NCBI RefSeq assembly: GCF_035594765.1
Contig: NC_085842.1
Location: 17,832,782 to 17,896,781 of the forward strand
Source of the DNA: Anolis carolinensis
Taxonomy: Eukaryota
Direction of reading: 5' to 3'
Length of the DNA stretch: 64,000 nucleotides
The notes under the pieces: generated by a model
Told to the model about the DNA's origin: nothing
The model's database searches: none
What the model saw: the letters and a program-made list of their open reading frames with translations, nothing else
In this document: piece after piece, positions 12,323 to 56,432 of the stretch
Position numbering within the stretch: position 1 is the first letter of the stretch
How the letters are laid out: every line of letters starts with the position of its first letter
Translations under genes and position numbers: made by a program

Positions 12323-12703
12323 CTGTTCTTCCTGCCTCTTGTCCTCTGCCCAACTCAGGAGGAAGCCTTCCGCCAGGGCCACCGCCTGGGAACAGGTCTC
12401 TGCCCCACACTCTCGGACCCAGCTCCCCATCTCTGGGGGCAGGAGGCTCAGGAACTGCTCCAGGATCACCAGGTCCAGCATCTCAGCCTTGGTGTGTTGC
12501 TCTGGCTTCAGCCACTGGCGGCAGAGATCGTGGAGGCGGCTGCAAACCTCTCTGGGCCCCTCGCCCTCTCGGTAGGAGGACTGCCTGAAGCGCTGGTGCT
12601 GTATGTGCACATTCAAAAACGTCTGCATAGTTCTCTCCCAGTATTCCCCACTGCTCCCAGCGACCCTGCCTGCTTCAGGTCCAGGTGAGTTGGGTCTCTC
12701 CAT
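12323..12703 (-). CDS. Unit B, SCAN exon coding part (acceptor 12826)
   Basis: SCAN domain; 381 nt from ATG to cag|gtgag donor as in all units. Confidence 0.9.
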
Positions 12704-17446: not shown

Positions 17447-18398
17447 TAGTTCTTTGGGAAATTTCTATATCCATCTTTGTAGGACATTAAAACTATTAGT
17501 TACGTAAAATAGGTGAAAACAATCTAAAACTTCCCATATGGACATCAATACTATAAAGTGCAATATAGCCTAAGCTTCTGTGCAACTGAAAAAAAAGCTA
17601 TTTTTTCCTTAATGTAAGATCTAGGGACAAAAATTCTGCAAAACAAATCAAATTCTCCTACTCTATAACAAAATCAATGATATATAACATTGTTAATTCT
17701 AAAATAACAACAGGACTCGTGTTTGTCAATTTAATGTGGATTAAAAGTGTCTGTGCCAGCAGCAGGGAAACAGATAGTAAATGCTAGCCAGAGATACAAT
17801 TTGCACATTAAGGGAAAAAATAGTGCAAGCATCTTTTCCTTTGACTTGGCCACAACAGAAGCACTGTGAACAATTCTGGAATCCTAGAACTGAAAACAAC
17901 ATTCGCAAACTGGAAATTTGCAACCAAGGTGGTAAAGGAGTTGAAAGCTAAGCCCAGAGGAACAATTAATGGAATTACATATGGGCTTTTTCTCAAATAA
18001 GGGACATAATAATTATATTTAAACTTCTGAAGGATTGTCACAGAAAGCTTGATTTCTGCTGCTCCAGAGAAGAGGACCTCAATTTAGGGAATCAAATAAC
18101 AAGAAAGGAGACTCCACCAAATCTTAGGCAAAACTTCACAAATGGTTCTGCTAATATGGGTGCCCAGAGAAGAAAAAGAGTTCTCCAAAACAGTCCCAAG
18201 TAAAAAAAAAAAAAAAAAAGGTGAAAAACTGGAACAGAGTTCAAAACCATGAAGACAATTGTCTAAGAAATCAGTCCAAAGTCAAGCCATGTGTTGCTGG
18301 AAGCCACCGGAATCACACGTGTTCATCGAGAAATGTTGAATGTATCGTCTACAGCACCAAAATTTCCACAACCTGCAATTTCCCTGTTGAAATTCATT

Positions 18399-19792
18399 TT
18401 ATAACTTTTGTCTCAGCTCTTTGGGTGGTTTTTCTCCTCTATGAATTCTCTGGTGGCTCACGAGAGATGACCTCTGATTAAAACATTTCCCACACTCCTG
18501 GCATTGGTATGGTTTCTCTCCTGTGTGGAGTCTTTTGTGCCTCCCCAAGTTTGAACTGCGAGCAAAACATTTCCCACACTCTTGGCATTGGTATGGTTTC
18601 TCTCCTGTGTGGTGTCTTTTGTGCCTCACCAATTGTGAACTGCGAGCAAACCAATTCCCACACTCCTGGCATTGGTATGGTTTCTCTCCTGTGTGGAGTC
18701 TTTTGTGGCTCACCAAGGCTGAACTGTCAGCAAAACATTTCCCACACTCCTGGCATTGGTAAGGCTTCTCTCCCGTGTGGAGTCTTTTGTGTTTCACCAA
18801 GGCTGAACTGTCAGCAAAACATTTCCCACACTCCTGGCATTGGAATGGCTTCTCTCCTGTGTGGAGTCTTTTGTGGTTCACCAAGGCTGAACTGTTAGTA
18901 AAACATTTCCCACACTCCTGGCATTGGTATGGCTTCTCTCTTGTGTGGAGTCTTTTGTGGCTCACCAAGGCTGAACTGTCAGTAAAACATTTCCCACACT
19001 CCTGGCATTGGTATGGCTTCTCTCCTGTGTGAAGCCTTTTGTGGCTCACCATGTTTGAACTGGAAGTAAAACATTTCCCACACTCCTGGCATTGGTATGG
19101 CTTCTCTCCTGTGTGGATTCTTTTGTGCCTCACCAAGCCTGAACTGTCAGCAAAACATTTCTCACACTCTTGGCATTGATATGGTTTCTCTCCTGTGTGG
19201 AGTCTTTTGTGGCTCACCAAGGCTGAACTGTCAGAAAAACATTTCCCGCACTCCTGACATTGGTATGGCTTCTCCCCTGTGTGGAGTCGTTTGTGTTTCA
19301 CCAAATCTGAATTGGAAGCAAAACATTTCTCACACTCCTGGCATTGGTGTGGCTTCTCTCCTGTGCGGAGTTTTTTGTTGCTCACCAAGTTTGAACTGTG
19401 AGGAAAACATTTCCCAGACTCCTGGTCTCTGTATGATTCCTGTCCTGTGTTAAATTTCTCGTGTTTTCCCAAGTGTGAACTCTGGATAAAAGATTTCCCA
19501 TACTCCTGGCTTATGAAATCCTCGGTTCCTTCAAAGATTTCTTGTTGGCTCAGATGTGGCAATTTGTAATCAGCAACACATTTTGCTGATACCTTCCATT
19601 TGAGATGGCTTTTCCCAGCACGGAATATTTTAGTTTGGGTAAAATATTGCCCAGATACATTGCATTTGTAGAGCATTTCTCTGGCAGAACCTTCATCTTC
19701 TTGGTGGGTTTGCTGGTGTCTAGGAAGGCCCCCATTGTGCCCAAAAGGTTTACTGGATTCGGTGTATACATTGCTCTTCTTCCTGTTATCTG
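18399..19792 (-). CDS. Unit C, C2H2 zinc-finger exon (11 intact fingers plus degenerate N-terminal fingers)
   Basis: open frame; TGEKP linkers; cacag|cag acceptor. Confidence 0.93.
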
Positions 19793-44646: not shown

Positions 44647-45797
44647 CAGTCAGTCCAGGGAGCAGAGCAGAGCAGATCATCCATCTACAACAGAAAGAGA
44701 ACGTCTCACCCAGGGGCAATTCTGACTGCTCTCTTTTCCCAAGGAGGAGGAACACATACTTGGGTGGGGGATACAACAAAAGCACCCAACACAAGCAGGC
44801 TCTTCCTTGTCAACGGCCTTAGAGAAATCACCTGCTGCAATAGCTTTTCTCCAAAGCACCCTTCTGCTAAGGCAGGGGAATCTGAATTCAGTTTGGTTAG
44901 AAGGATTTCACTGATTTTCACATTTCAGTCTTGCAGATGACTACAAAGGAGGGGCAAATATAGTGGAGTAAGTAGATATACCCATCCAGGGCCGGCCCTA
45001 GGTAATTTTCAAGTGTAAGCAAACAGTATTTTGCCCCCTCCCAAAAAAAACAATCACTAAAAAATAAAAGGTAGGTGAACATAATAGACAAAAGAGTAAC
45101 CTTACAAACTAGAAATTTATTTACATCAGTATGTTCATATAGTTATATTACATAGAATTAACATAAATTAACCTTTTTTAGAATGCAAATATTTTATCAA
45201 ACTTATTTTATTTATTTATTTACAGCATTTTTACACCCCCCCTTCTCACCCGAGGAGACTCAAAGAGGCAAAAAAATCTGGCAAAATTCAATGCCAATAA
45301 CAAGTTCAAAAATAAAGCATAACACATTTAAAATAATGAAACATTACTTAATAGAACAGTATACAAAACTTAAAACATAAATATTTAAATCCATTCATCC
45401 ATGGACCTTGCATGTAAACTTTAATTCAGGCCGTGTCGAGTCACAGAACTCATTCATTAAATGCTTTAAAATATGGAACGCTTCACGAATTAGCAACAAT
45501 TTTAAGTTCCTGGTCATGCTGTCTCGTCAGATTTCTCAGACTTTGGGCTTACTAATAACAGACAACTAAATTGCATGCTTGTTGCGTCTGTCAATCAGTT
45601 TTGTTTTAGAGAATGCAGCCCCATGAGAATAGACACCTTCTTTGTAAGGAAGCAAACTCTTGTCCTTCAGAAGTGCCATGCCAGCCTGGCCCATGGCAAT
45701 AGGTGTGGCAACATAGCTAGCCTCTGGCCTCTTCACTTGAGTGGATATTTTAACATCCCGTGTGTCTTAACACAAATTAACTTGAACACCTTTAAAA

Positions 45798-48125
45798 TTA
45801 AAAAAAGATTTTTCTAGCTTTCCGTTTTGAAAACTCGCGCACTAGTAAGTCTGTTTCCATTTCATCCAACAAGTCTTTTTCAATGGCCAAGGTTGCTAGT
45901 TCACTCACGCGCTCTTGGCCCGAAGATGATCTTAAGTAGTTCCTTATACATTTTAATTTTGAAAAACTCATTTCATCGCTGGCCATTGATACTGGAAGCG
46001 TTAACAGAATTCTCAATGCAATATAAACATTTGGGAAAGTATCTACATAACCACGTTTGGTTAGGAAAGACAAGGCTTCAGCTGGGTTGCTTCCAGGGGG
46101 CAGCATAGGTGCAAATATTTGTAGCTCATCAAACAGATCATCACCGTTCACATCGCAGTCTTCTCCATCGCTCAAAACGGTTTGAAGATGTTGACAGTCA
46201 TTCTTCAATTCTGTTTCATTCAAACTTTTCCCAAGCTTTGAAATATCATACAGAAATTTGAAACTTTCGCTATGGTTTTCCATTAGCTCACATCTCTCCT
46301 TTAATGAGGATATTGCTGTGTCAAGCACAACAAAGAAGAAGTTGACTTTAAAAGATTCTTTATCAGAATGTACAGCTTCATCTTCACTCTCACTGGAATG
46401 TGCAGCATCACCTTCACTCTCATTGGAATGTGCAGCTTCATCTTCACTCTCACTTGAATGTGCAGCTTCATCTTCACTCTCATTGTTTACTTCTCTTGGT
46501 CGAACTAGCGTTTCTTTTTCAAAGTCAGCAGCAACATCAATTTTTTCTGCAAGTTCCTTTGCATCCTTAATGACGCTATTTAGACCTTCATCAGATCTCA
46601 TCTTTTCTAGAAATGATTGTACACTCTTAATAAGATTCATAGAACTTTGAAGATTATTTGTGACTTTTTGCAACCGTTTACTCACCATATTTATCTTATG
46701 CAGGATCTCATGCCATGTCACTAAACAGCATAGAAACTTGAAGCTTTTCAGTTTCTTTAGAAGCGTGATAGCAGTGTTCCTACCAAATGCACCAAATTTC
46801 TGCTCTTGAGAAGCTTCATATAAGGCATCATATACTTCTTCAATGTGGAACCTCAAAGGCAACAATGCCTCGATTTTACTTTCCCACCTAATAATGCAGA
46901 GTGGTCTGACTTTGAGAACTGAAACATGCTTTGACAAAATACTCCATCTTTCAGTAGAACTTGAAAAAAAGTTAAAGATTTCTTGTATGGTGCTGAAACA
47001 GTCTACTGCAACGCTGCAAGACAGAGCTGCATCATTTAAGACCAAGTTCAGGGAGTGGTTTCCACATGGTACATAAAAGGCTCTCGGATTTAACTCAAGG
47101 ATCCTCTTCTGAACTCCAGAATGCTTTCCCTTCATTGCAGAAGCATTGTCATAGCCCTGGCCTCTCATGGTTTTTAAAGGAATGCCTCGTGTTTCTAACT
47201 CTTTGAGTAAAATTTCTGTGAGGCCTTCACCTGAAGAATGGGTAACAGGAACAAAGCCTAAAAAATGTTCCTTAACTGAGACATCTTCATTTGCTTCAAT
47301 TTTTACGAATTTTACCACCAACGTCATTTGTTCGGTGTGGCTAACATCGGGAATGCAGTCTAATCTAATCGAATAATATTTTGCCTGGTGTAGTTGTTGT
47401 AAAATATTACCCTGGATCTTGGCCGACAAGAAACTAACAAACTCGTTCTGGACATTTTTGCTCAAATAGTGAACGTGTGTTTCTTTGGAAGCGATTCTTC
47501 TCAGATGTTCGGCCATAAAAGCATCAAACTTTGCTATATGTTCTACCATTTTTAAAAAGTTGCCATTATTACGTTCAAATAGAGCCTCTTTATTCCCTCG
47601 AAATGCCAATCCTTGAGTCCCCAAAAACTGTACTACACATAGTAAGCGTTTCAGAACTTGATGCCAATGTCCAGATTCAGCATGAACAAGCCTTTCATGT
47701 TCTGCATCAATAGTTTTGTTTAAACATAAACGTGCAGAGAGTTCATGCCAAGATGTACAGTTTGTAATATGAGTATGGGATTTCTCATGACTGGTCAAAA
47801 CCTTGCCCAAGTTCTGCCAGTCAGAATACCCTTTGCTACTAGCAAGAAGAGAATTAGCATTTCCAAAAACTTTGCAAGCAAAACAAAAAACTGCATTTTT
47901 CAATTTAGAATATAGTAGCCAAATCCTGTCGACTTGCTCTCCGTTGCGCAGTTTCCTTGTATAGTGTTTTGAGGTAAATCTCCTACCCCTACTGTCCCGA
48001 GGAAAATCTTTGTCAGTGACTTGCTGAGGTCCTCGTTTCACAAGTATTTTCCGTACCTCATCATTTATTTTAGATGGCCACTCTCCACAATCATCTGAAA
48101 TCGATAATGGGTCTCTGCTTAGTTC
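45798..48125 (-). CDS. hAT transposase main exon (TTF-type zinc finger, DUF4371-like region, DDE core, hAT dimerisation region); last exon of predicted SCAN-KRAB-transposase fusion
   Basis: 775 open codons from tttttttttcag| acceptor; WLLYS..NAVFCFACKVF, LAFRG, NGNFL, SIRLDCIPDVSHTEQ, GQGYDNASAM, CGNHSLNL, RWE, PVSMASDEMSFSKLK. Confidence 0.92.
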   Translation of the reverse strand, partial: ELSRDPLSISDDCGEWPSKINDEVRKILVKRGPQQVTDKDFPRDSRGRRFTSKHYTRKLRNGEQVDRIWLLYSKLKNAVFCFACKVFGNANSLLASSKGYSDWQNLGKVLTSHEKSHTHITNCTSWHELSARLCLNKTIDAEHERLVHAESGHWHQVLKRLLCVVQFLGTQGLAFRGNKEALFERNNGNFLKMVEHIAKFDAFMAEHLRRIASKETHVHYLSKNVQNEFVSFLSAKIQGNILQQLHQAKYYSIRLDCIPDVSHTEQMTLVVKFVKIEANEDVSVKEHFLGFVPVTHSSGEGLTEILLKELETRGIPLKTMRGQGYDNASAMKGKHSGVQKRILELNPRAFYVPCGNHSLNLVLNDAALSCSVAVDCFSTIQEIFNFFSSSTERWSILSKHVSVLKVRPLCIIRWESKIEALLPLRFHIEEVYDALYEASQEQKFGAFGRNTAITLLKKLKSFKFLCCLVTWHEILHKINMVSKRLQKVTNNLQSSMNLIKSVQSFLEKMRSDEGLNSVIKDAKELAEKIDVAADFEKETLVRPREVNNESEDEAAHSSESEDEAAHSNESEGDAAHSSESEDEAVHSDKESFKVNFFFVVLDTAISSLKERCELMENHSESFKFLYDISKLGKSLNETELKNDCQHLQTVLSDGEDCDVNGDDLFDELQIFAPMLPPGSNPAEALSFLTKRGYVDTFPNVYIALRILLTLPVSMASDEMSFSKLKCIRNYLRSSSGQERVSELATLAIEKDLLDEMETDLLVREFSKRKARKIFF
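46366..46485 (-). repeat. 30-bp coding tandem repeat x4 (ESEDEAAHSS)
   Basis: gaatgtgcagcttcatcttcactctca units, frame preserved. Confidence 0.9.
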
Positions 48126-48562
48126 CTGAAAAAAAAATAATATGTAGTGTATGTTAACTTTTAAAAGATTTCAAAGGTTTAATGCAGTGCAGTATCAATA
48201 CCTATAATACCTTATTATGAAATCTTTAATTAAAAATGGAAATAAAATAAACCTTGTGACAGTGGCCAATCGGAAAGGTAGATTTTGCATATTAATTATA
48301 AATGTAAACCATGATAAACACAAATTATTTTATAAAATTATGGTGGCAGTTCTGAACAGATTTACTGAATGTATATGTTAATAAAATCTACCTAAAAATA
48401 GCTCTGAGATATTTTATAATAAAGAATTCTGGAAAAGTGCCCTTTTCATCCTCCACCTCCATTCCTCCCTCCTCTCAACAAGAGCTAAACAAACTGGACA
48501 GGCCTAGGCCAATTATATTTTCCTAATATGTGTACTAATAAGATAAAATTAAATCTACTTAC

Positions 48563-48912
48563 AGTTTCAATGGTTTGCGGACTAGATGGCAGGACTGCAT
48601 CTCCTAATAAATCATCATCCACATCTTCGGTATCGGTCCCAGTTAGGTCAATAATGGAAGGTGCTAATGGTGTTGCTGTGGTCACTGTAAGATGGTCTTG
48701 ACTTGCTGGTGGTCCAGGTGGAAGATCAGATATTGGTATCTTGTCGTTATCGTCATGAGCTGATTCAGTCAATTTAGTTGGCTCTGTGTTTCTTGTTGCA
48801 CATGATGGTGAGGTGGTTTGCAATGCTTTAGATTGATTCTCATCTTCTTTGCAATGCTGCAACTTCCTTTTACGATGAAATGCTCCTGATGGCTTTCCTT
48901 GCTGGACATTTT
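48563..48912 (-). CDS. hAT transposase N-terminal exon (350 nt, phase 1 to 0)
   Basis: tttttttaacag| acceptor, act|gtaagt donor; KPSGAFHRKRK basic motif typical of N-termini of this transposase group; in frame with 48125 exon. Confidence 0.75.
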
Positions 48913-49476
48913 CTGTTAAAAAAACCCAACTCATCATATAAGGAAGGGAGATGCCACAGAACAGCTTTCAGCTTACAACAACACAGCAGAGATACAGCCT
49001 GCAGCTCCATCCAAGTACTAACTATGGCTGATTCTGCGTAGCTTCCAAAATCAGATGGGAGTTGGTACTTTTAGGGTATTTAGGTCCCAAGATGTATATA
49101 TCAGCCCTCTTTTACCAAGAGTAAAAGAAATACAAATTAAAACTTTGGAAAACAAGAGTGAATACAAAGAAACACTAATTAGCGGGGGGGGGGGACAATT
49201 AACATTAATAATAATGATACCCCCAGCTGTCCATCATTCAGGCAGCTCCGCCCCCTTCCCTTCCCAGCTGAGCGCTCTTGAGCCCAGTGGCGATGGCCAG
49301 GCCTCAGTGCTGAACGAGAATGGCTCTCTCTACCTGGGCCAGCTGAGCACCCCCCCCCCCCCCCCAAGTTGCTGGAAGCCAAAGGAATCACACGTGTTCA
49401 TTGAGAAATGTTAAATGTATCATCTATAGCACCAACATGTCCACAACCTGCAATTCCTCTGTTGTAATTTATTTTA

Positions 49477-50407
<931 letters not shown>

Positions 50408-51142
50408 GTTAGCCTGGTTGGCTGGAAGGAAAAACAAGGTTAAATATCACCCACATAAAAACATGTATAGCTCCGTCTGCAGATCTGAAGCCAGGGGAAG
50501 TTTGTTCTTTTTTATGCTTCACTCTCCGGCCCCACTCTCCAGCCAATCAATCTGCGCAATGACTCTTAATAGATTTCCAAGAAGCCCGAGTTACTGGGCA
50601 GAAGCATGTAAGCAGACATCAGGAGCAAGTCAGCTTTTGCAAAAAAAACTCTTTTCAATCATTTTCTGTACTCCTTTTGGCTTCAGAGATGGCATGGCTT
50701 TCCAAGCCATCCAAGAGTACACAGGATGCAAAACCAGCTTGCTGAAAAAGTGTGCCTGCAGTCAGGAGAGGTTTGCTGAGTTACCTTTTGAAATCTAGTC
50801 CCCTTGCCTCCCCTGCCTCTCTTTCTTTCTCAAACACACTCGGAGAGAGAGAGTGAGATAGTGTGACTGATCTGGGGTGATCACTCTTGAGAGGTTTTCC
50901 AAGGAGCCCAGTTGCTGCAAGGGACTCCAGTTATGGAAGTCTTCCCACTGGAGACCAAATTGGTGCTAACATTGCTGCTGCTCAGACACCAAGTCAATAT
51001 TACTCTTAAGTCATATATTTCTAACATAATCCCTGCCTTGAGAACTCTCAGTGATTGTGATGATTTAGGATCCTGCTCCCACCAGGGAACTGCTGATTAG
51101 GATACTGCAAAATAGAAATCTCCATCAAGGAGGGAGCCATAC

Positions 51143-51269
51143 CAAGACAGTCCAAAATCCCACGAATCTCTTCCATGATCTGCATATGCAAGACTTTCTG
51201 ATCAGGATTCAGGAGAACCCACTCCTCCAGGGAGAAATTGACAGCCACATCCTTAAAGGCGATTGGGCC
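51143..51269 (-). CDS. Unit E, KRAB-A exon (127 nt)
   Basis: GPIAFKDVAVNFSLEEWVLLNPDQKVLHMQIMEEI; ccag| acceptor, |gtatg donor, open. Confidence 0.85.
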
Positions 51270-52178
51270 CTGGTGGAAAAAGAAAAATAATCCTTCTCAC
51301 ATAAGGGCTATCAAGAAAAATAATAACAAGAAAATCTTTAAAGTAGATTTTCATTTCCTGTTGTTTGAAAGAGAAAGGGCTATCTTCCATGCCATAGTTT
51401 AAACTTTGTAGAGACAACCAGTTTGCCACCATAACATCCATTTCTTAATTGATATTTAGAATCAGAAATGGAATCTGATTCTTAAAATATACAACTTTTA
51501 TTGTGGTGCCCAGAACTGGACACAGTGTTATTCCAGGTGAGGTCTCACCAAAGCAAAAAGAAGGTCATCATGACTTCCCTGAATGTAGACACTACATTCC
51601 TTTGGATGCAGCCCAAAATCCCATAGGCTTTTAAGCCGCTGCATCAAACTGTTGGCTCATGATCAACTTGTGGTCTACTAACACTTCAAGATGCCTTTCA
51701 TATTAATTGTTGTCAAGCCAGGTGTCACCCATCCTGTATCTGTGCATTGTGTATTTCCTGCCTTAGTGTACTATCCTACATTTCCCCTTGTTAGAAATTA
51801 ATTTCGTTAATTTTCACCCAGCTCTGTTATCTGATAAGACCGTTTTGAATTCTGATTCTGTGTTCTGGAGTATTAGCTATTCCTCCTAGTTTGGTGTCAT
51901 CTGGAAATATGATCCGCATGCCCTGTAAACCTTCATCCAAGTCATTAAGAAAGATGTTGAACAGTACTGAGCCAGGACAGAACCCTGCAGCACCAAGTAG
52001 TCATTTCTTTCAAGGGTGAAGAGGAACCATTGGTGAGTACCCTTTGGATTCAGTTACTCAACCAATTACAAATCCACCTCACACTTGTATCATCAAGGCC
52101 ATTTTTACTAGTTGTTTGTAAGACCATGGGAGGCCTTGCCAAAGGCCTTAAAGAAGTCAAGATGTGCTACATCCACTA

Positions 52179-52179
<1 letters not shown>

Positions 52180-52232
<53 letters not shown>
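52180..52232. repeat. (AAT)n microsatellite
   Basis: direct reading. Confidence 0.95.
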
Positions 52233-52237
<5 letters not shown>

Positions 52238-53039
52238 AGGGACTTGGGGTGGCTCACAAAAAGCACTCCAAAGTGCAGCACACATAAAATACACACTACA
52301 TAAGCATATAAAACAATGACAACATAAATTTACACAACACTTTCACCTACAAACGTCACATAAATTCCATAAAATGCAGCAGTACCTCAAGATAAAAATG
52401 ATTGTCTTCCAGTATCAATCTAAACTGCTGGAGTGAAGCAATCACTAAGTTCTCAAGTCTACATTCCCTTCCTCTACTAAGCTTGTAACAAGGTACAGGA
52501 AAAACCATAATCAGAACATGGGAATCCAAACATGAACATGAATCCAAAACCAAGACCGTAGAAATGTCTTAAAAGCATGAATCCAAACTCCCAAGATCTT
52601 AGACTAAAACATGAACTTGAAGCAAAACTCAAGATCCTCACTGCTATGCAGTGTTGCCTGATTTGAATTCTAAAGGAAACAATTCCCTGATTTAAGGTCT
52701 GCAAGCCATGAAGTCATACCTGTGACCTTGACTCCCTTGCCTGTGATATTTTTCACACTGTTGTTTCTCACGGTGTCTTTGTGACTTCCTTATTTTGTTT
52801 GCTTCTTCCCTAATATGAAGCCTAAGATTCCTGCTGACTGCAGGTGTATTTTCATGAGAACTTTCTCGCCCATCCTTATCTGGGGTTGCTATGAGACAAC
52901 CAGACGAAAAGCTTTTGCCAGTCACTGCATCTCCCTCGTTGCTGGCCTCTGACGCAGTTTTACTTTCAAGCCCATTCTCAGAGACAGGATCTATACTCCC
53001 CTCATTTCCCACATTGAAAAATCCATCCAGTCATCTTCA

Positions 53040-54290
53040 TCATCTGGAGCTGCTGCAACAGGGGGATTGTCCGCTCCTTGTCTCCAGCCCCAGTGAGCAA
53101 CCTGGGAGAAGCTCTTTGGACCAGCTGAAGTTTCTGAGCACTCTTCAGAGGCAGTCCCACATAGAGTGCATTACAGTAATCCAGATGTGATGTAACTAAG
53201 GCACATACCACCATTGCCAGATCTGGCTTCTCAAGGAAAGGGCGCAGTTGGCGCATAAGTGTACAAAGGCCCTCCTGGCCACCTTCAACACCTGGAACTC
53301 CAGGTTCAGCGCCAAGTCCAGGAGAACCCCCAAACTGAACCTGTGTCTTCAGGAGGGAATGTGACTCCATACAGCACAGGCTGGATTCCTATTTGCTAAT
53401 CTGCCTTTTGATTGACCAGGAGTACCAGTGTCATATCTGGAATAGGTTTCAAATTGTTTTCCTTCATCCAGTAAATTACTGATGGCAGCCAACTGGTTTA
53501 GGGTCAGGATAGCTTCCTTGGCTTTAGGTGGAAAAGAGTTAGAGTTGGGTATCATCTGAATATAGGTGACACTGCACGCCAAAACTCTGGATGACTGTTC
53601 CCAGTGGTTTCATGTATATGTTGAACAGCATGGGGGACAAAACCGAGCCTGTGGAACCCCACAAATTAACAGCCAGGGGTTCGAAAAGGAGTCCCGCAGC
53701 ACCACCTTCTGGGTATGGCCCTCCAGAAAGGACTGGAGCCCATCCTAATAAGACAACCCAAAAGGAGTCCATGGTCAATAGTATCGAAAGCTGCTGAGAA
53801 ATCCAGGAGAAGCAACAGAGAAACACACCCCACCCCCCTCTAGCTCTCTGCAGAGGTCATCCACCAAGGAGACCAAAGCTGTCTCTGTTCCATGGCCAGG
53901 CCTAAAACCAGACTAAACCTCTTGAGATGGACCATCTTAATTGGTCCCCCACCCCTGCAGAGGTTTGGATTCCCAGAGAGTCTAAACCTGACCATGTAGT
54001 GATGAGTCCACAACAATGGAACTATAATCATGTTCCTCCACACTATCATCACCACCAATCCATTCTGCACAGAAAACAAGGTCCAAAGTGTCTCCAGCAG
54101 CATGGATAGGGCAAGACACCACCTGGGACAGACCCATGGTTGTCATGGAGGCCATGAAGTCATGAGCCATTCCTGAAAGGGCGGTCTCTGCATGGACATT
54201 GAAGTCTCCCAGCACGATTTGCCACTGAGACCCCAACTCCAATCCCGAGACCATCCCGGCTAACTCAGGAAGGGACACTGTTGAGCAAAC
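53040..54290 (-). mobile_element. Degenerate L2 LINE fragments
   Basis: VLGDFNVH endonuclease motif, GSVLSPMLFNIYM, YSDDTQL, LDYCNALYVGLP. Confidence 0.85.
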
Positions 54291-54721
54291 CCTACTGTTT
54301 GCTCTTTTTTTCTCCTTCTACTGACACAACCAAAGAACCCCCTTTTACTGTTTTTAATTTCTCTGGAAAGCCTGGGCTCATTTTCTGCTTTGGCTTGTGA
54401 GACCTTTTCCCTATTTATGCTAGTTAGTCATTTGAATTCTTTTTTGGTAATTCCTACCCCCCCCCCACCCTTTTCAATTTCTTCTACACCTCTCTTTTAA
54501 GTCTTAGCTCAGCTGAAAGATCTTTGGACATTTATTCTGGTTTCTTTAGATATCTCTTATTTTTCCCCTCTTGTTGGCGCTATTTACAATTGTGTCTTCC
54601 GTATCTCACTTTTAAGAAACTCCCATTCTATCTTTTCTGTTGCAAGAGATGTTCGATGACTGTGCCTGGAATCAATGACAGGCCGCTCCAGTCCTTCTCT
54701 CCCAGGAATCCCTCCGCTTAC

Positions 54722-54765
54722 CTGATTCAGTTCCACTCCATTTGTTGACAACATCATTCCAGTCC
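54722..54765 (-). CDS. Unit E, second linker exon (44 nt; in-frame 27-nt shorter than C/D)
   Basis: ttccag| and cag|gtaag; GTGMMLSTNGVELNQ. Confidence 0.75.
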
Positions 54766-55321
54766 CTGGAAGAGAGAGCAAGGTATGGAAAGCTGATCAG
54801 GGATGACAATGATGGTCTATAAAGAAACCTATGAGAAAATGACCCTAAGAACACAGGGCATTCTCCAGCCCAGTATTTGTGGCCCATGTTCCAATTGATC
54901 ATCTGATCATTAATTTTGTTGTTGTTGTTGTTGTATCAGTAGATTTTGTACATTTATTTCATACATTTCCCCACCCCCTTCCTATTTGTCACTCTTTCTT
55001 CTTTCTATATTATCCACTTATTTTTCTAATATATCTTAGTTCTATTCATTCTTTTCTTTCTCCCCCATCCCATAACCATATCACAATTTCCATTATAACT
55101 TTTCCTTCATCCATGAGCTCAGCTTTTCCCTTCTCTATATAATATTTGCATTGGCTTCTCTACTTTTATCCATTCCGTACCTGTATAATCATCTCATGGA
55201 CAAATGATCCTGCACGTGCACCTTCTCAAGCTCAAACTGATTGTGTATGTGCTACAATCCCCGCAAAGGGGAATTTACACTAGCATAAAACACCAAAACT
55301 CCCAGAAGAGTTCCTTCTTGC

Positions 55322-55448
55322 CTTGCAAAGTTGCCGCTCCATCCCCTTTCTGCTTGAGGTCTTTCAGCTGGAGCCTCTGGGTGGTGTCTGAAGGAGATTT
55401 CTCTGATGTAGGGACATCACGCTGGACTTCAATACAGTTATTTTGGGC
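55322..55448 (-). CDS. Unit E, first linker exon (127 nt, GC donor)
   Basis: open frame; donor aag|gcaaga at the position of paralogous agg|gtaaga. Confidence 0.7.
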
Positions 55449-55787
55449 CTGAAAGAAAACAGAGAAATTCAGAAGTAGTGTGGAGAAAGATTAGAAAAGG
55501 ATTTTTTTCCAAATGTGAAGAAACTGCATTCTGAGACTAGTTGTATTCCAAATCCCATCATTTTCAATGTAATGTGTGAGGTCAACAATTCTGAGTTGTG
55601 CAGCAACTGAGCTGACAGTGGATATGGAGGTGACAGCAGGAGGGGCAGAGCAGGTGGGAAAAGAGGAAGAGGGAACAAGCTTTTGGCTTATTCCCCATTT
55701 TGGTCGGATCTTGGAAGAAAAGCAAGATTTAGGTTTAATCTATCCATCAGTCCCAAGGTTAGTGGAACCAACAGAAAATGCTCTCAC

Positions 55788-56420
55788 CTGTTCTTCCCGC
55801 CTCTTGTCCTCTGTCTGACTCAGGAGGAAGCCTTCCGCCAGGGCCACCGCCTGGGAAGAGGTCTCTGCCCCACACTCTCGGACCCAGCTCCCCATCTCTG
55901 GGGGCAGGATGCTCAGGAACTGCTCCAGGATCACCAGGTCCAGCATCTCAGCCTTGGTGTGTTGCTCTGGCTTCAGCCACTGGCGGCAGAGATCGTGGAG
56001 GTGGCTGCAAACCTCTCTGGGTCCCTCACCCTCTTGGTAGAAGGACTGTCTGAAGAGCTGGCGCTGTATGTGCGCATTTAGCAATGTCTGCGTAGTTCTT
56101 TCCCCGGATTCCCCACTGCTCTCGTGGGCCCTGCCTGCTTCAGGTCCAGGTGAGTTGGGTCTCTCCATGTTGGAACCACCCTCAGGTCCAGGTGAATTGG
56201 ATCTCTCCATGTTGGAACCACCCTCAAGTCCAGGCGAATTGGGTTTCTCCATGTTGGAACCACCCTCAAGTCCAGGTGAATTGGATCTCTCCATGTTGGA
56301 ACCACCCTCAAGTCCAGGCGAATTGGGTTTCTCCATGTTGGAACCACCCTCAGGTCCAGGTGAGTTGGGTCTCTCCATGTTGGAACCACCCTCAGGTCCA
56401 GGTGAATTGAGTCTCTCCAT
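55788..56420 (-). CDS. Unit E, SCAN exon coding part with 7x14-aa N-terminal repeat (acceptor 56545)
   Basis: SCAN domain intact; first ATG 56420. Confidence 0.88.
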
Positions 56421-56432
56421 GTTGGAACCACT
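56139..56432 (-). repeat. 42-bp coding tandem repeat x7 ([14 protein letters not shown])
   Basis: ATGs at 42-nt spacing from 56420 to 56168; single copy in units A-D. Confidence 0.93.

Follow-up and report, generated by a model that had tools for sequence, protein, structure and literature searches.

A one-base loss in the native frame of a hAT transposase probably joined KRAB exons to the transposase in Anolis carolinensis

The loss of a single base from the native frame of a hAT transposase very probably fused the reading frame entered from an upstream KRAB exon to the transposase frame in a gene of Anolis carolinensis. This gene is encoded on the minus strand of the window, that is, the whole 64,000-nucleotide stretch of chromosome CM069368.1 (GCA_035594765.1) that was analyzed here; positions are those of the window unless another locus is named. 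The proposed scenario involves a hAT element that would have settled in a zinc-finger gene, downstream of its SCAN and KRAB exons, with the ATG at 48909 being, most likely, the codon at which translation of the ZMYM1-like hAT transposase originally began. The 5' leader of the element would already have contained a usable cag splice acceptor three bases before this ATG. At some stage, one base would have been lost from the A/G run AAGAAGAAG in codons 4-6, and this loss would have moved the native ATG out of frame and, by the same stroke, merged the phase-1 frame entered from the KRAB exon with the transposase frame. Owing to the deletion, the first coding exon of the transposon (hereafter exon A) would be entered in phase 1 and left in phase 0, matching the downstream intron of the transposon. 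The same birth route is known from KRABINER (ZNF112-Mlmar1) of vespertilionid bats, where the acceptor is likewise located just upstream of the transposon ORF. As described by Cosby et al. (bioRxiv 10.1101/2020.05.07.082677), KRABINER arose by an insertion downstream of KRAB exons, with a pre-existing transposon acceptor and a unique 1-nt deletion.

The window gene corresponds to RefSeq XP_062829388.1 (P0123), a predicted SCAN-KRAB-hAT protein of 1202 amino acids that includes exon A and the second transposon exon (exon B) of the window exactly and whose locus (L008) is a substring of the window. A Pfam search started with P0123 identifies SCAN, KRAB, DUF4371 and Dimer_Tnp_hAT domains; the scores for PF05699 and PF14291 exceed the cut-offs, as befits a member of the hAT superfamily. 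A protein search with exon B matched A. carolinensis proteins annotated as "zinc finger MYM-type protein 1-like". The SCAN and KRAB exons, exon A and exon B were all mapped (Table 1), and their phases fit a KRAB-transposase fusion architecture; exon A opens with two bases of a split codon and closes on a full codon. In the RefSeq model, the KRAB exon (51269-51143) is joined to position 48912, which yields the junction ...EEIRGILDCL/ENVQQGKPSGA (here and below, a slash marks the splice site). Thus, RefSeq already models both the splice and the frame that were predicted in a preliminary description of this DNA, namely, a KRAB exon spliced in frame at the acceptor of exon A; the junction peptide would read ILDCL/ENVQQGKPSGAFHR. 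The evidence for the predicted use of this acceptor consists of the Gnomon models of RefSeq and of a table entry ("100% cov", Table S3 of Cosby et al.) on KHATD2, a related gene considered below. A junction-spanning protein search (P0123:255-430) matched only KRAB proteins and no transcript-derived fragment.

Table 1. Features of the SCAN-KRAB-hAT gene and of the hAT element in the window
Feature	Position	Strand	Basis
First coding exon with the SCAN domain (approximate 3' boundary)	55782..56420	-	Pfam and tblastn of P0123
Linker coding exon (approximate boundaries)	55320..55451	-	tblastn of P0123, 100% identity
Small coding exon (GTGMMLSTNGVELNQ) between the SCAN and KRAB exons	54722..54765	-	
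KRAB-A exon, phase 1 end (...CTT G/gt)	51143..51269	-	Pfam KRAB at P0123 residues 270-303
Transposon-derived 5' leader upstream of the acceptor	48913..49205	-	shared with L002 and L005
Pair of ATGs upstream of the acceptor, located in the transposon 5' leader and read in the fused frame	48932..48937	-	in frame in the window, L004 and L007
Predicted splice acceptor cag joining the KRAB exon to the first coding exon of the transposon	48913..48915 (AG 48914-48913)	-	sequence and P0123
Exon A, first coding exon of the transposon, 350 nt, phase 1 in, phase 0 out	48563..48912	-	exact substring of P0123
Probable native start codon of the hAT transposase, shifted by one base from the open frame	48907..48909	-	aligned with the ATG of L002/L003 and L006
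Probable site of the 1-nt deletion, within GGAAAG (exact place in the A/G run arbitrary)	48893..48898	-	alignments and motif listing
Short out-of-frame ORF from the native ATG, 46 codons and TGA	48769..48909	-	
Transposon-inherited intron GT...AG, 437 nt (donor GT 48562-48561, acceptor 48127-48126)	48126..48562	-	
Exon B, 775 codons and stop, DUF4371 and hAT dimerisation domain	45798..48125	-	exact substring of P0123
3' terminal inverted-repeat-like hAT end (CAGGGCCGGCCCTAGG)	44987..45002	+	L002/L003 homology ends here

On the minus strand, a T-rich tract is followed by the aacag acceptor, the triplet AAA and the ATG (48909-48907), so that the acceptor region reads ...tttttttaacag/aaaatgtccagcaaggaaagccatcaggagca. 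The preliminary description had placed this ATG just inside the acceptor and out of frame, and the sequence bears this out: the frame of the ATG begins with MSSKESHQEHF... and terminates after 46 codons. The open frame is one base off this ATG (...YMMSWVFLTENVQQGKPSGAFHRKRKLQHC...) and reaches the GT donor of the intron.

The case for the missing base comes from a direct copy-by-copy alignment, in which four fusion copies (the window, L001, L004 and L007) were compared with the non-fusion copies L002/L003 and L006. The non-fusion sample is small and consists of two near-identical A. carolinensis loci taken as DNA (L002 and L003, which encode P0007), one contig from another sequencing run (L006) and three predicted proteins; P0004, P0005 and P0028 were compared as proteins only. 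The distance from the ATG to the GCA codon is 29 nt in all four fusion paralogs vs 30 nt in L002, L003 and L006, and the missing base falls within the run AAGAAGAAG. The L002/L003 copies, whose identity to the window over the length of the element is 81%, read gcag/AAA ATG TCA AGC AAG AAG AAG CCA TCG GGA GCA, that is, MSSKKKPSGA; the L006 contig reads ATG TCG AGC AAG AAA AAA ACA TCT GGA GCA; and all four fusion copies read aacag/AAA ATGTCCAGCAAG(A/G)AAAGCCATCAGGAGCA. Within the stretch that determines the spacing, L002/L003 have AAGAAGAAGCC and L006 has AAGAAAAAAAC, compared with AAGAA-AAGCC or AAGGA-AAGCC in the fusion copies. Removal of one base from AAGAAGAAGCC produces exactly the AAGAAAAGCC of three paralogs, and the G at 48897, which is unique to the window paralog, arose later. 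Thus, a single-base deletion, as in a KRABINER-type birth, is present in the four fusion copies and absent from L002/L003 and L006.

The predicted proteins P0005, P0007 and P0028 begin with MSSKKKPSGA, and P0004 contains MSSRKRPSGA (among the older predicted proteins, P0005 and P0028 start with MSSKKKPSGAFHRKRRLQHCKEDENQ, and MSSRKRPSGAFHHKRKLQHC lies inside P0004). Together with the copy alignments, the N-termini of P0005, P0028 and P0004 indicate that the native N-terminus is MSSKKKPSGA. The window ATG at 48909 is not a chance ATG, given that each of its bases aligns with the start codon in the non-fusion copies. The preliminary description had proposed to align hAT copies over the start of the exon and had named three outcomes that would speak against a deletion; the alignment reveals neither the same spacing in the non-fusion copies, nor a different start codon, nor an upstream coding exon of their own. 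The same description had suggested that one added base would restore MSSK(R/G)KPSGA. The spacing and the near-identical N-terminus agree with this suggestion, but the lost codon is K rather than R or G. In the Logan contigs L009-L013 (P0006, P0008), exon A is absent from the ~700-880 nt of upstream sequence inspected.

The comparison with the undeleted copy also clarifies why the loss of one base would suffice. In the KRAB phase, L002 reads NVKQEEAIGSISS and then runs into a stop after 13 codons, so that the frame is closed without the deletion, as in a KRABINER-type birth, and one deletion does both jobs. This finding supports the suggestion of the preliminary description that a 1-nt deletion may have put the acceptor in frame with the phase-1 KRAB exon; a KRAB-spliced message from an undeleted copy would be truncated inside exon A. 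The deletion shifts the length of exon A from 3n to 3n+2, that is, to phase 1 in and phase 0 out, as the downstream intron of the transposon needs, and a direct splice from the KRAB exon to exon B is out of frame, as derived by hand from the splice phases. In the neighbouring intact KZNF gene, the KRAB donor is also in phase 1 and the finger exon is entered in phase 1, which suggests that exon A stepped into the slot of the finger exon. The parental finger exon itself is represented by a remnant alone (49509-49952). Comparison of this remnant with the neighbour (18293-19510) indicates that the last few C2H2 fingers and the 3' flank are left, with the 5' part that includes the acceptor missing.

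The consequences of the deletion for translation from within the element are mixed. The preliminary description suggested that the deletion may have disabled autonomous translation; this is correct for the native ATG, the frame of which is closed, but not for the two in-frame ATGs further upstream, at 48937 and 48934, which are preceded by a TGA at 48970-48968. Three of the four paralogs, namely, the window, L004 and L007, have these ATGs in the fused frame, and in L001 they are out of frame, so that a caveat already attached to them in that description, on account of their location upstream of the acceptor, was justified. Translation from such starts might also yield a protein that lacks KRAB. 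The counterpart ATG in L002 begins a uORF of 6 codons that ends with TAG.

The homology to the transposon extends 105-290 nt upstream of the acceptor, with the leader shared with L002 from 49018 and with the non-fusion locus L005 from Anolis sagrei from ~49157-49205. A CAG is found at the homologous place in the non-fusion copies L002/L003 and L005, as expected of a splice site of transposon origin. The context of the acceptor in L005 (...TTTTTAACAG AAAATGT) is the same as in the fusion copies; the corresponding sequences are TTAGCAG in L002 and AACAC in L006. With CAC instead of CAG in L006, the acceptor is not universal in the family. The L002 copy, the exon A of which is 81% identical to that of the window, contains a 181-nt GT-AG intron at the same place, and L006 contains two ORFs ~780 nt apart; judging from these copies, the layout of exon A, intron and exon B is ancestral. 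The A. sagrei locus is internally deleted and lacks SCAN and KRAB upstream, and given that a 14-nt deletion in this locus spans the key site, L005 cannot date the 1-nt loss. At the opposite side of the element, the hAT 3' end is recognizable (CAGGGCCGGCCC at 44987). A pattern search detected no matching 5' terminal repeat in the window, L001 or L002, and a proposed 5' end at 49365 was not confirmed.

The L002 and L003 loci are located on different chromosomes, and a block of 6.7 kb that surrounds the non-fusion hAT gene is 99.8% identical between them (L002 2537-9213 and L003 2535-9208). The shared block includes 3.4 kb upstream of the gene, with SINE copies and a long palindrome; its left limit coincides with this palindrome and shows no hAT end. 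This sharing reflects either very recent transposition of a composite element or segmental duplication.

Three further fusion genes are present on CM069368.1, namely, P0001 (L001), P0121 (L004) and P0126 (L007), and all share the deletion, which, being common to the four paralogs, is older than their duplication. The L001 locus was considered as an ortholog in another species, but this is ruled out because it overlaps the last 4.8 kb of the window at 100% identity; hence, it holds the next paralog along the same chromosome. Each of the four paralogs retains the AG acceptor and the T-run along with the deletion. The fusion family has expanded by segmental duplication, with dS around 0.07-0.09. 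The four SCAN/KRAB-hAT genes are located within ~140 kb (window 45798-56420, L001 10001-17770, L004 3001-12460, L007 3001-12551), one being oriented opposite to the others; the entry published for KHATD2 refers to a single gene id.

For exon B, comparison of the four paralogs, rather than of orthologs, gives dS values of 0.066-0.089 and dN values of 0.027-0.040; the resulting dN/dS is 0.36-0.50, and every bootstrap interval stays below 1. Exon A (dN/dS 0.36-1.7, intervals including 1) is too short to decide. The coding alignment of 2763 columns contains only two indels, of 33 and 90 nt, both of which are multiples of three and fall in the acidic SESEDEAAH repeat. The copy number of this repeat varies among the paralogs (window 46350-46480; exon B columns 1642-1731). 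The intron alignment of 439 columns contains 57 variable columns and five non-triplet indels (1, 1, 1, 4 and 2 nt). The dN/dS of exon B and the triplet-only indels are those of a captured transposase under purifying selection and, at the level of paralog comparison, show that the reading frame has been kept open by selection.

Most of the positions that are conserved in the transposase family are retained as well: in a comparison with 111 non-fusion relatives, at least 93% of which agree in 142 columns, every fusion copy retains 123 of these columns; 19 differ in at least one copy, and eight differ in all four, with the same residue. The common substitutions include R to M in the ERSFS motif, LDCTPD to LDCIPD, and YDNGSN to YDNASA; the latter two adjoin conserved acidic residues, the conserved D and E themselves being kept. 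This pattern suggests retention of DNA binding and dimerisation and relaxation of catalysis. A PDB sequence search found no hAT structure. Substitutions common to all fusion copies map to exon B residues 258, 328, 330, 417, 714, 719 and 740, and the motif DEMSFSKLK is encoded at 45930-45960.

The difference in spacing between the fusion and non-fusion copies could, in principle, be due to a 1-nt insertion in the non-fusion lineage, with no deletion in the fusion lineage, and the non-fusion copies compared are only a handful. Nevertheless, the 30-nt spacing keeps the ATG in the transposase frame in two separate lineages, L002/L003 and L006, as well as in three other predicted proteins, whereas the 29-nt spacing leaves the ATG off the transposase frame, which makes such an insertion exceedingly improbable. 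A different objection is that the gene is a decaying transposon copy, in which case the fusion model would be an annotation artefact and the shifted ATG one random lesion among many. The RefSeq proteins are indeed predictions, the dN/dS of exon A is near 1 in some pairs, and no 5' terminal repeat was found. Decay is nonetheless hard to reconcile with four paralogs each of which keeps ~2.7 kb open, with coding indels that are exclusively multiples of three vs the five non-triplet indels in the intron, with the exon B dN/dS of 0.36-0.50, and with the 123 of 142 conserved columns that are intact in all four paralogs; we regard this interpretation as very unlikely.

Another alternative concerns the product rather than the event. 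The main product could be a transposase-derived protein without KRAB, translated from the ATGs at 48937/48934 of a leader-start or intron-retaining transcript, so that the deletion would matter as the link between the upstream ATGs and the transposase frame and not for KRAB. The frame is open from 48937, an upstream ATG is in frame in L004 and L007 as well, and an Ensembl model, P0127, is built from the upstream start. In L001, however, these ATGs are out of frame, and yet this paralog has an intact ORF under the same constraint; furthermore, all current RefSeq models splice KRAB in, and the AG acceptor with its T-run is kept in 4 of the 4 paralogs. A main product of this kind therefore appears unlikely.

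Under the favored interpretation, in which the one-base loss joined the KRAB-entered frame to the transposase, the protein would be predicted to use its transposase part to tether SCAN and KRAB to the DNA sites that this part recognises and to repress nearby genes; alternatively, the fusion might serve as a DNA-tethered scaffold. In reporter assays described by Cosby et al. (bioRxiv 10.1101/2020.05.07.082677), four other KRAB-transposase fusions repress; KHATD2 is not among them. A more speculative possibility, which we consider doubtful, is that of a two-output gene that would yield a SCAN-KRAB-transposase repressor from the host promoter and, in three of the four paralogs, a protein without KRAB started at the leader ATGs that the one-base loss brought into frame; the two products could pair via the hAT dimerisation domain and modulate each other. 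In broader terms, the combination of a pre-existing acceptor with a one-base deletion would be a repeatable recipe for host-transposase fusion genes and not peculiar to KRABINER.

The fusion gene family is already catalogued: the A. carolinensis gene LOC100558310, which encodes P0121, appears under the name KHATD2 among the KRAB-hAT fusions of Cosby et al. (bioRxiv 10.1101/2020.05.07.082677, Table S3). The KHATD2 gene has the same SCAN-KRAB-exon A-exon B layout, acceptor and 1-nt deletion as the window gene and is located on the same chromosome, ~55 kb apart. The window gene is a separate gene, with ~96% nucleotide identity to L004 in exon B and fewer N-terminal and acidic repeats. The consensus in Data S1 of the same preprint starts at the exon B acceptor, which is marked as the captured splice site of KHATD2. 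In the portions of the preprint text and supplements that were available, neither exon A nor its acceptor nor the deletion is described for KHATD2, and KHATD2 is not mentioned in the accessible portions of the other papers searched. The details of the acceptor and the deletion thus seem to be undescribed because Data S1 marks the next acceptor downstream. With exon A included, the host/transposon junction of the KHATD2 family moves one exon upstream, to a point three bases before the native start codon. Given that the gene family and the principle are already known, the gain is a refinement and not a surprise.

Compared with KRABINER, the anole fusion differs in several respects. KRABINER is derived from a mariner element, is reported from one locus only and is found alongside the transcript of the parental gene ZNF112. 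The anole fusion, in contrast, involves a hAT element with its own intron, includes a SCAN domain, is accompanied by a decayed finger exon and is present in four copies. The anole family would thus represent a second, independent case in which the loss of a single base joins host exons to a transposase, in a different transposon superfamily and a different vertebrate class, and would support the generality of this route. The closest counterparts without host exons are the ZMYM1-like hAT transposases of the DUF4371 type (P0007 and P0005), which have the same domain set, 67-73% amino-acid identity and the same exon-intron-exon plan. These transposases have their own ATG and no host exons, whereas the fusion copies have lost that frame and differ at conserved positions.

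Several additional features of these loci deserve mention. In A. sagrei, the model P0122 (L005 4001-16226, CM073871.1) starts in the internally deleted hAT element, including exon A and the start of exon B, and extends from there into a Myb_DNA-bind_4 protein, which may represent another, unrelated exonisation of this same element. The segment 49003-49100 of the window and the corresponding L005 3795-3909 resemble the 3' half of 5S rRNA or the head of a 5S-derived SINE, although the Rfam match in L005 is weak (17.5 bits, E 0.36); L002 and L004 contain a different SINE-like sequence at this spot. The N-terminal stretch that precedes the SCAN domain is encoded by a 42-nt tandem repeat (window 56140-56431, L004 2990-3700), with ~7 units in the window gene and many more in P0121. 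Finally, this KHATD2 paralog lacks the usual stop (L004 ~12430-12460), so that its protein ends with ...KARKIMGLRSPKQN vs ...KARKIFF.
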